A DNA stretch of 63,859 bases, counting the filler, from Olpidium bornovanus S191 (Eukaryota > Fungi > Olpidiomycota), in assembly GCA_017911155.1 (NCBI GenBank). It is 29 parts of 29 records of this genome, joined end to end, with 100 filler letters (N's around TTAATTAATTAA, not from the genome) between each part and the next. Parts side by side here need not be neighbours in the genome. Positions count along the whole stretch, not along the records: positions 22,745 to 25,236 come from JAEFCI010003223.1; 28 more parts are not named here. One strand, 5' to 3'. The position numbers and the translations under genes were made by a program. Positions 22,603 to 25,803 of this stretch are shown piece by piece. How positions within the stretch are numbered: position 1 is the first letter of the stretch; every line of letters begins with the position of its first letter. The notes beneath the pieces were generated by a model. The model saw nothing but the letters and a program-made list of their open reading frames with translations, was not told the DNA's origin and did no database searches.

Positions 22603-23160
22603 GTGAGTCACGTTCGGCTCCCGCCGCCCCTACTCCATTACCTGNNNNNNNNNNNNNNNNNNNNNNNNNNNNNNNNNNNNNNNNNNNNTTAATTAATTAA
22701 NNNNNNNNNNNNNNNNNNNNNNNNNNNNNNNNNNNNNNNNNNNNCATGTATAGACGATGATACGGACGTCCAAGTATGCGATTGAAAAACGGCACATTTA
22801 AAACTTCACAAAATAAAACGGACACGAAGAGATACGGAAGGTCAAACCAGCAGTTGTATTGTCGTTATCACAAATTTTCAAAGAGCAAAGTGAGAATACA
22901 TTCAGACCTCGACGGCTGTGCGCGGCTTGCGCAAACGGACGGTGCGGCTGCGCTTTTCTCGCGGCGCTACGGGCGAACGATGATTACACGTGCGGCCGGC
23001 GTTCAGCAGCGATCATGGGCCGGGGGGAGTCCCGTCGGGCGTCTCACTTTTGGCGATTCTTTTTCGCGCGCAGGAGAGCTGATTTGAAAATCGGAGATAG
23101 AACAATATCCTACCTTGTCCCCTTCGTCTGGATGCTGGGACTTCCTTTGAATAGACAATT

Positions 23161-23654
23161 TTACCTGCCAGGCCTACAAAGAAAGGTGTTATTTAAAGTG
23201 ATGTAGCACATAAAATCTAGCCCCTGGCCATTTACATTGTCAAGAACTTCATTTCTCCATTTCATCACTTCGTCAGACTCTTCTACTTTCCATCCTTTAG
23301 GAAAAACGTGAGAAGGTGCAAGCTTTTTCACCGAGTTTCTCACTCTCTTGTTCTTCCTTTTAGAAGACTAAAATGCAAAAATTAAGGTGAAAATATTGAA
23401 GAAGGTTATATATTGGAAATTCTAATTTCACCTTATCAACAGAGGCAGCAGCTGTGGAGAAAGCTTTAAAATTGGGAGAAAAAAAATAGATTAACAACAG
23501 GTAGGGCTAGTACAGTTTGCTTAATGAAATTATTCATAGCCAACCAGTTTTTGAGCTCACTGCTGGTTTCTTTCTCCAGTCCATTTTCCAAGGCAATCTC
23601 GAGAAATGTTCCGGCAATATGGGTACAATCTTCCAGGGAAGGAGAAGGATACAT
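23161..23654 (-). CDS. Putative small spliced gene of unknown function, head-to-head with PRP38, in a lower-GC stretch
   Basis: Open segments MYPSPSLEDCTHIAGTFLEIALENGLEKETSSELKNWLAMNNFIKQ and RKNKRVRNSVKKLAPSHVFPKGWKVEESDEVMKWRNEVLDNV are separated by T-rich intron-like DNA. No family recognised. Confidence 0.3.
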
Positions 23655-23812
23655 TACCCAGGGGGACAGGACGGCGGGCCGGTAACGTAAGAGGGGCCAC
23701 GTGACCTCACTGTTTCTGGCGCCTCTCAACAAAAACGACCGTTCGTGGCCGTCGAGAACCCAAAAAAAAAGAAGGAACCCATTCGCACTTGCCAGCGCCG
23801 TCGACGCCCACC

Positions 23813-25003
23813 ATGTAAGCAGCGTCAGAAACCAAGACAGTCCCGGAGAGGCGAGCTTCGACTGAGTTTGACGACCGACCGAGCTGGCGAACCGGCACCG
23901 CTGTGCTCAGCATTTCGGTCGTGGCGCTAATCTCTGCTTGGTCCCCCCCCCGGGGTTCCAGGGCAAACCGCACCGCTGTGGACGCAATAGCCGTCCACGG
24001 GACCAACCCGCAGTTCCTAATCGAGAAGATAATGCGCACGAGGATCTATGACTCCATGTACTGGAAAGAGGAGTGCTTTGGCCTCACTGGTGAGCGGACG
24101 CCTGCGCGACCAGACTTGTCGGAGAGGCGAACATCGCGGCGTCCGTCGTCCTGCCGCGTTTCGTGCGGCGTTAGTCACCTTCCCGCCTTTAGTGTTGGAG
24201 CGTGTTTCGCGCCCTTGACGGGGCATGGCAAGCTGTCGGGGGAAGCCAATCCCTCGTTCCCTCGTTCCTTCGCGCCGTCTGATAGGGGACTATCCCGTTT
24301 GCGAAATTCCTGCGAAGCGGAAAGTCTTATCGACAAAGCCGTGGCACTTACGGAAATCGGCGGCATGTACGGCAACCAGAAGCCGGTGAAGTTCCTCTGC
24401 CTCTTGCTGAAGCTGCTGCAACTGCAGCCGGGGAAGGACATAATATACCAGTACATCCTCAACGAGGACTACAAGTACGTTTTTCCGCCGTCGCCCGGCC
24501 GGCGTGCCCCTTTTTCGGAGGACGTCCAGTCAGCTGAGATTCACCCTGCGAGCTTTCAGGTATCTGCGCGCACTTGGAGCTTTTTATTTGAGACTGGTTG
24601 GGACGGCGCGGGAGACGTACGAGTACCTGGAGCCGCTCTACATCGACTACCGGAAACTCCGAAGACGGCTGCCCGGTGAGTTCGCTTCCAGGTGCAGCAG
24701 CGGCCAATGCACGGCACCGCGTGCGGCTTCGTGCGCGCCGGCCGGGCCTGTTCTAAACGAGACACCCTCAACCGGCGTCGCCGCACACTCCATCTTCCCG
24801 CAGACGGCAGCTGCGACATCCGCCATATGGACGAATTCATCGATGATCTCCTCCGCGAGGAACGCGTATGTGACACCATCCTCCCGCGGTTGACGAAACG
24901 GGAGGTGCTGGAGGAGACGGAGGACCTGCCTCCAAGGGTCAGCGTCCTCGAGGAGGAGGACGACGATGACGAGATCGAGGAGGGATCGAAACCGAAACAA
25001 TAA
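23813..25003 (+). CDS. PRP38: Pre-mRNA splicing factor PRP38 (PRPF38A ortholog), five exons, complete
   Basis: Spliced product MANRTAVDAIAVHGTNPQFLIEKIMRTRIYDSMYWKEECFGLTAESLIDKA...KFLCLLLKLLQLQP...YLRALGAFYLRL...YLEPLYIDYRKLR...HMDEFIDDLLREERVCDTILPRL closely matches PRPF38A. Stop TAA at 25001-25003. Confidence 0.95.
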
Positions 25004-25803
25004 TTGAAATAGGAGAGAGGCCGAGGGCCGTTCAGCCGTTTTTTTTTTTTGTTGTGATGTGGACGTCGGCCATCGTCTCTGTGTTTTGCGTAGTCGGCCA
25101 TCGCCTGACCGCCGCAGGACGGAGTTTTTCGGCGCGGCGGGAGGCGCGGCTCCTGCCCGTGTTAGGCGTTGCGTACACCCCATTCGCAACGGGCGGCTCG
25201 CCGGCGGCGTGGACGGGAAGCGGAAATAGCAACATGNNNNNNNNNNNNNNNNNNNNNNNNNNNNNNNNNNNNNNNNNNNNTTAATTAATTAANNNNNNNN
25301 NNNNNNNNNNNNNNNNNNNNNNNNNNNNNNNNNNNNCATGCCGGAAACGGTTTCACGCCCAAAACAAATAAAACTCTCGCGCGACGACGGAAGGCGGCCA
25401 AATCTGCGTTTCATTTCGCTTCCGGATCTGCTTCATATTCTATTTTTGAAATCCGCACGGGATTCTCGAAGAAATGGCACCGAGAAATGGGGCTCTGACT
25501 AAACAAAAATATGCAACACCAATTCTTGCAATATCACTGCAGATATAAATACTCGAACCTAAATTAAAAATTCACAGTCTGCAGGGGTAACCGTGGCGCT
25601 GTCTCGGTGGGAACAGAGTTCACCAAATGTGTGTGTGGTAAATACAAAACAATAAAACTTTCCGCCCGGACGCCACACTCCCTCTTCCTTTCCCCCCCTT
25701 AAGCACTTCCTCAACACTCTCGCTCGGTCCGGGCCCGCCGTGAAGTCGGCTTACCCAACTCACAGAAAAAAAAAGTGAACTCTTGTTTCTGCAGCAAGCA
25801 GCC

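Follow-up and report, generated by a model that had tools for sequence, protein, structure and literature searches.

Introduction

Introns that disrupt the start codon form a relatively rare class (PMC1626468). The RPL19 genes of the microsporidia Nosema ceranae and Encephalitozoon cuniculi carry such an intron (PMC2685015), and in a report on Yarrowia lipolytica a figure legend covers 42 'start codon' introns, the accompanying schematic placing 'TRR' (stop codons) directly behind the ATG (PMC13309789). Two further kinds of system touch on this layout: start-stop elements, in which an AUG is followed at once by a stop codon, are established repressors (PMC13338717, PMC11915504), and many splicing factors autoregulate via unproductive splicing (PMC5737846, PMC6547761).

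Here we describe an intron that lies inside the initiation codon of PRP38, a gene for a spliceosomal B-complex/activation factor, in Olpidium bornovanus S191. O. bornovanus is a root-parasitic fungus. The gene occupies the + strand of contig JAEFCI010003223.1 (2492 bp), which makes up positions 22745-25236 of the window, that is, of the whole stretch of DNA that was analysed (63,859 nucleotides) and to which all coordinates below refer. JAEFCI designates the assembly of O. bornovanus S191, which was obtained by binning sequence from non-axenic zoospores that had been washed off cucumber roots (PMC7865070). An earlier note, made from the sequence alone, had proposed the split start codon, its possible conservation and a regulatory role for it; these proposals are taken up below where the evidence bears on them.

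Results

Structure and identity of the PRP38 gene

Direct reading and exon-by-exon translation yield a gene of five exons with 200 codons and a stop. Exon 1 (minimum extent 23763-23814) is a 5′ leader that ends in CCACC-AT (23808-23814), so that its last two bases are the first two of the start codon. Intron 1 (23815-23961; 147 nt, a multiple of three, GC 0.63) interrupts codon 1 in phase 2, opening with the donor GTAAGC (23815-23820) and closing with the acceptor CCAG (23958-23961), after which the sequence continues as G-GCA-AAC-CGC-ACC from 23962. The CTAAT branch motif named in the earlier note is present (23927-23931), but the distance of about 35 nt given for it needs correction, as the putative branch A at 23930 lies 31 nt before the 3′ splice site. 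Exon 2 (23962-24089) contributes the last base of the start codon (G), all of codons 2-43 (ANRT...CFGLT) and base 1 of codon 44, and opens with ANRTAVDAIAVHGTNPQ. It is followed by intron 2 (24090-24317; 228 nt, phase 1 after GLT), exon 3 (24318-24474), intron 3 (24475-24559; 85 nt, GTACGT..CAG, phase 2), exon 4 (24560-24675), intron 4 (24676-24803; 128 nt, GTGAGT..CAG, phase 1) and the coding part of exon 5 (24804-25003), in which the stop codon TAA occupies 25001-25003; the ends of the transcript contigs fall at about 25012-25037.

Protein searches used either single exons or the natural read-through ORF 23903-24676 as query. Exons 2-5 each score above the gathering cut-off of Pfam PF03371 (45.3, 50.1, 44 and 40.3 bits, respectively, against 22.4 bits) and match profile positions 2-34, 36-88, 91-126 and 137-172 of 173. 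This match over most of the profile, together with the conserved MANRT...HGTNPQ N-terminus, places the protein in the PRP38 family. Summed over exons, its identity is 72% to the PRP38 of Spizellomyces and 70% to those of Rhizophlyctis and Rhizophagus, and the protein collection has no relative closer than about 72%; such values for a chytrid and a glomeromycote fit the position expected for Olpidium. HGTNPQ is invariant in the N-terminal PRP38 alignment, and M-A-N-(R/T)-T stands at or near the start in nearly all of the 120 homologues listed. Since the MANRT start is conserved in this way, the methionine missing from exon 2 must be put together from the AT at 23813-23814 and the G at 23962.

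This five-exon gene is unannotated in the public collection. The public gene calls on the contig are prokaryote-style: one gives a 215-residue product (24032-24679; L087:1288-1935) that begins with Met25 and treats introns 2 and 3 as coding sequence, and a second gives a 98-residue product over exon 5 (24707-25003; L087:1963-2259). As the former starts at Met25 and reads through introns, the five-exon structure corrects the public model.

RNA evidence for the split initiation codon

Twenty public runs contain part of the stretch, and four of these (X1, X2, X3 and X19) were compared in detail. Their types are guesses ('RNA?'), and the assembled contigs keep the major path only and give neither strand nor amount. 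A 662-nt contig of X2, which begins at 23763, consists of 23763-23814, 23962-24088, 24317-24474, 24560-24674 and 24803-25012. Its first joint is of the GT..AG type, skips the 147 nt between 23814 and 23962 and lies within a fully spliced transcript, the mRNA of which reads CCACC-AUG-GCA-AAC-CGC-ACC (MANRT). The joint carries a one-base ambiguity (the G at 23815 equals the G at 23962) that leaves the mRNA sequence unchanged. The junction that had been predicted between 23814 and 23962 is thus present in RNA, in one assembled contig that is the only one to hold the full-length AT/G joint, and with it both the intron within the PRP38 start codon (AT/GTAAGC...CCAG/G) and the dependence of the conserved N-terminus on its removal are borne out. 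In X3, from a study other than that of X2, the three downstream joints are found (24088>24317 for intron 2, as in X2, and those of introns 3 and 4), and its contig extends a few bases past 23962 that mismatch the intron, an overhang that fits the AT/G junction. The joint of intron 3 is assembled in X1, X2 and X3 and that of intron 4 in these three and X19. An alternative start further upstream, which would have undone the proposal, was looked for: positions 23655-23812 contain no ATG, and a stop interrupts the frame ahead of the start codon. Canonical splice sites, a junction inside the ATG that is seen in a transcript, recreation of the homologous AUG and the lack of another upstream AUG in that region together define a start-codon-disrupting spliceosomal intron.

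It is conceivable that this structure is an artefact, through mis-assembly, a contaminant contig or a true start at Met25 as in the database call. The assembly is a binned, metagenome-style one from non-axenic zoospores (PMC7865070), the automatic gene call begins at Met25 and reads through introns, and the PRP38 gene is GC-rich where the region next to it is AT-rich. However, independent runs from three studies have identical sequence across the PRP38 gene, with joints that coincide precisely with the predicted GT..AG sites, the invariant HGTNPQ lies within the 24 residues that precede Met25, the identities to chytrid and Rhizophagus PRP38 are those expected for Olpidium, and the database call is of the prokaryote style. 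An artefact or wrong model is therefore very improbable, and this reading is already largely refuted.

A contig of X2 carries a G>C difference at 22924, so that the strain of the study that produced it is not identical to S191.

The start-stop in unspliced RNA follows from the splice donor

As the earlier note had it, the unspliced PRP38 RNA reads AUG-UAA (23813-23818), and this TAA is the sole in-frame stop of the 147-nt intron 1. The hexamer is a start-stop in the unspliced isoform only, and the one contig that covers the unspliced exon 1/intron 1 boundary comes from X19, a run of unknown type. Behind the AUG-UAA the next AUG is the in-frame Met25 (24032-24034), a possible reinitiation start in intron-1-retaining RNA, and a protein begun there would drop the invariant HGTNPQ.

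The Met-stop does not survive as a feature independent of splicing. An intron in phase 2 of codon 1 begins with G-T, and the codon after the ATG consequently consists of that T followed by the bases at donor positions +3 and +4; a GTRAGT consensus turns it into TAA or TGA, which makes the start-stop a by-product of the splice site. Three of the gene's four donors would have the same effect in an AT/G context. Judged from the donor consensus, the AUG-UAA arises directly from the GTAAG donor and is not an element that evolved separately. The 'TRR' in the Yarrowia legend points to the same donor-derived effect in the 42 start-codon introns that the legend covers (PMC13309789).

The split start is confined to Olpidium among the sampled loci, and intron 2 is widespread

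The earlier note had suggested looking for a conserved phase-2 intron in codon 1 across fungal PRP38 genes. The sample for this comparison was made up of six named genomes (Paraphysoderma, Fimicolochytrium, Basidiobolus, Rhizophagus, Spizellomyces and Rhizophlyctis) and of metagenome contigs, against which the N-terminal alignment was scanned and which gave 80 PRP38 loci; close relatives of Olpidium lie outside it. Conservation of the split is contradicted by both parts of the sample, as all six named loci have an uninterrupted ATG-GCN-AAY and the ATG stands directly before the Ala codon in 79/80 metagenome loci. The exception, L026 (basidiomycete-like, ANTTARGALSI), is a contig cut 14 nt upstream in which ...ttggtag precedes the GCA of the Ala codon, and a phase-0 intron may follow its ATG directly. 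With the ATG uninterrupted in all the other sampled PRP38 genes, the AT/G intron is, as far as this sample reaches, lineage-specific and would have been gained or shifted on the Olpidium branch. The absence of the split from the sampled loci also means that there is no sign of selection for it.

A phase-1 intron after GLT, equivalent to intron 2 of Olpidium, is found in 33/86 other loci, which belong to widely differing lineages (L001, L003, L004 and 30 metagenome loci); the presence of this intron makes these 33 loci demonstrably genomic. Its distribution indicates that the intron position after CFGLT is clearly ancient. In Rhizophlyctis rosea PRP38 (L006:1501-1590) an intron is seen after codon 5 (ACAG/GTACGC).

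Unproductive forms of the two 5′ introns differ between samples

In X1 the assembled forms are different from those of X2. One contig (23822-24090) runs from the eighth base of intron 1 through exon 2, another (24061-24314) retains intron 2, and a joint 24088>24285 uses an alternative acceptor of intron 2 with the exon start at 24286, which adds 24286-24317 (+32 nt), shifts the frame and leads to a stop 34 codons on; the canonical joint of intron 2 was not assembled in this run. Introns 3 and 4 are spliced (24285-24474, 24560-24674 and 24803-25037) and have zero coverage, and the depths of contig records 1 (28), 2 and 3 (10.8 + 16.4) and 4 (29.4) add up. This additivity and the lack of coverage in introns 3 and 4 make DNA contamination unlikely, and the X1 contigs are RNA in which the assembled forms are non-coding. 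As the intron-1 contig starts at 23822, and hence without the AUG-UAA, it may reflect an internal transcription start instead of retention.

In X19 (2012) a contig spanning 23762-24675 follows the genome without a break across introns 1-3, while intron 4 occurs in both forms. Contig ends with poly(A) tails, a minus-strand splice and the lack of coverage of 23417-23752 (a hole that proves little alone) indicate that X19 is at least partly cDNA; the colinear contig could include antisense RNA or DNA. Unproductive isoforms of the gene thus exist beside the coding one, through retention of introns 1 and 2 and the alternative acceptor in X1 and through the colinear introns 1-3 in X19, with the spliced form carried by X2 and X3. 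The cautious statement is that such intron-1 and intron-2 forms occur, and that which form dominates varies from sample to sample. In some samples (X1, and X19 only partly) the splicing of introns 1 and 2 is less complete than that of introns 3 and 4, as read from the presence of contigs alone.

These observations raise the alternative of a regulated switch, in which introns 1 and 2 are detained and the PRP38 mRNA is kept untranslatable until they are removed according to life stage (dormant zoospore versus root growth), spliceosome capacity or the level of Prp38. Such a switch would account for X1, and probably X19, keeping intron 1 and an unproductive intron 2 where X2 and X3 show the fully spliced form, and for only the two 5′ introns being affected in X1 (X19 also keeps intron 3); the repressor role of start-stops and the autoregulation of other splicing factors lend it precedent. 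X1 and X2 come from the same study, and variation of unproductive forms between samples of one study could be real regulation that a neutral reading understates. Yet contigs show presence only, the split start is unconserved in 85 other PRP38 loci, and our literature search for PRP38/PRPF38A autoregulation found nothing specific. The conserved element that accompanies autoregulatory unproductive splicing is likewise missing, with at most 1/80 metagenome loci and 0/6 genomes being without a contiguous ATG.

The introns themselves offer little that would speak for such regulation. Introns 1 and 2 are both multiples of three and free of in-frame stops except for the TAA of the first donor, a pattern that introns 3 and 4, whose lengths are not multiples of three, do not share and that would suit a switch. 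In shuffled sequences, however, freedom from stops is unremarkable at 63% GC (P = 0.27 and 0.13 for introns 1 and 2, respectively). As a sign of selection, the combination in the two 5′ introns has a chance of ∼0.004, including the 1/9 chance that both are multiples of three, but this figure is post hoc and we do not rely on it. Folded with their flanks, introns 1 and 2 are no stabler than shuffles (z = -0.15 and +0.83), which leaves a structure-gated splice site in either of them unsupported. An Rfam scan of the piece gave no match inside the gene or its introns, and no intronic H/ACA snoRNA of the plant type, as is present in plant PRP38 (PMC12218528), was seen in the Olpidium PRP38 introns. 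Weighing both sides, we consider a regulated switch, and with it a regulatory use of intron 1/2 splicing, unlikely.

Transcription around the gene

The 3′ end of an upstream, highly represented + strand transcript lies at 22745-22822 (X19 contig depth 1134-2648), with poly(A) added after 22822 and an AATAAA hexamer at 22812-22817. In this poly(A)-signal region an Rfam match to DGCR5, a vertebrate lncRNA motif (22800-22831), stays below threshold (31.9 versus 50 bits) and is probably due to chance. The upstream transcript overlaps by ∼30 nt the 3′ end of a spliced minus-strand transcript (22793-23404) that is divergent from PRP38 and has a 62-nt intron at 23174-23235 (CT..AC on the + strand). 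The region of the latter is AT-rich (30-44% GC compared with 55-69% in PRP38), its ORFs match no Pfam family and have no convincing Atlas match, and the transcript may code for a small protein specific to the lineage, or for none. X19 leaves uncovered the ∼357 nt (23405-23761) that separate it from the PRP38 leader, and this gap between divergent transcripts suggests a bidirectional promoter. At the other end X19 contigs go on at similar depth past the apparent PRP38 3′ end (∼25037), through 25038-25236 and off the piece; neither Pfam nor Atlas gave a family for ORFs in this segment, and the signal may come from a downstream or antisense transcript.

Discussion

We assign a probability of roughly 80% to the reading that an ordinary U2-type GT-AG intron happens to fall in codon 1 of Olpidium PRP38, as a lineage-specific and neutral or mildly useful quirk that comes with somewhat inefficient splicing of the 5′ introns. 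The initiator AUG (CCACC-AUG-G) exists only once intron 1 has been removed. Unspliced or mis-spliced RNA would accordingly give no full-length Prp38; the unspliced form would lead to a Met-stop and then at best to a truncated product from Met25, or to decay, and Prp38 output would depend on how efficiently the 5′ introns are spliced. The idea that PRP38 translation is gated on splicing holds to the extent that the conserved start needs splicing, but it is not distinctive, as the same is true of any intron-containing gene.

The direction of any feedback also matters. Splicing needs Prp38, so a mere dependence of PRP38 on splicing amounts to a positive loop and not to a homeostat, which is a point against the regulated switch. 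For homeostatic autoregulation excess Prp38 would have to favour retention or the acceptor at 24286. In a bolder version the two 5′ introns, the first with its AUG-UAA and the second, stop-free and a multiple of three in length, with its frameshifting alternative acceptor, would be detained; dormant zoospores, or cells of low splicing capacity, would keep PRP38 as RNA that is not translatable, and the completion of splicing would make the AUG and turn on Prp38 synthesis, giving a bistable, splicing-gated commitment switch. We regard this version as speculative and quite unlikely.

On our preferred reading, an ordinary intron that happens to lie in codon 1, the split PRP38 start is, as the evidence stands, a curiosity of gene structure whose eye-catching Met-stop comes automatically from the donor consensus. 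What is gained is an RNA-verified instance of a start codon split by an intron, from an early-diverging fungus with a genome that lacks gene models, and a case that shows the kind of split start that annotators will miss. If the sample-dependent retention of introns 1 and 2 were regulated, it would be a very compact coupling of the translation of a spliceosome factor to splicing.

Among known systems the PRP38/PRPF38A family itself (PF03371) has several features in common with the Olpidium gene: the complete PRP38 domain, an N-terminus of the form MANRT...HGTNPQ and, after GLT, the conserved phase-1 intron. The Olpidium gene differs in that the protein is short (200 residues) and has an acidic tail, in that it is without the RS/HIND region, and in its split start codon.

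With the autoregulated splicing factors, RBM10 and the SR proteins with their AS-NMD, it has in common that a splicing-factor gene makes non-coding isoforms, by retention or a frameshifting alternative 3′ splice site, beside the coding one. In those systems, however, unproductive splicing of the pre-mRNA is promoted by the very protein that it encodes, and the element shows conservation that often amounts to ultraconservation (PMC5737846, PMC6547761), whereas the split start of PRP38 is unconserved in the sampled loci. The comparison with the start-stop of Arabidopsis NIP5;1 is similarly limited. The AUGUAA is identical, has a good initiation context and lies upstream of the main frame, in PRP38 in the unspliced isoform only. 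Start-stops of the NIP5;1 type sit in mature 5′ UTRs and act on exported mRNA (PMC13338717, PMC11915504), while that of PRP38 lasts only until its intron is spliced out and arises as a by-product of the consensus for 5′ splice sites; by this comparison the resemblance is one of sequence only.

The layout of PRP38 belongs to the known class of start-codon-disrupting introns. As in microsporidian RPL19 and the Yarrowia genes, the ATG has a GT-AG intron within it or directly adjoining it, only splicing completes the AUG or the ORF, and the donor gives ATG-TRR in the unspliced RNA, for Yarrowia as drawn in the schematic (PMC13309789, PMC2685015). Most known cases are genes for ribosomal proteins or genes with high expression, and their splicing is efficient. 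In contrast, the host gene here is a core spliceosome factor of an early-diverging zoosporic fungus, and its AT/G intron is absent from all other sampled PRP38 genes.
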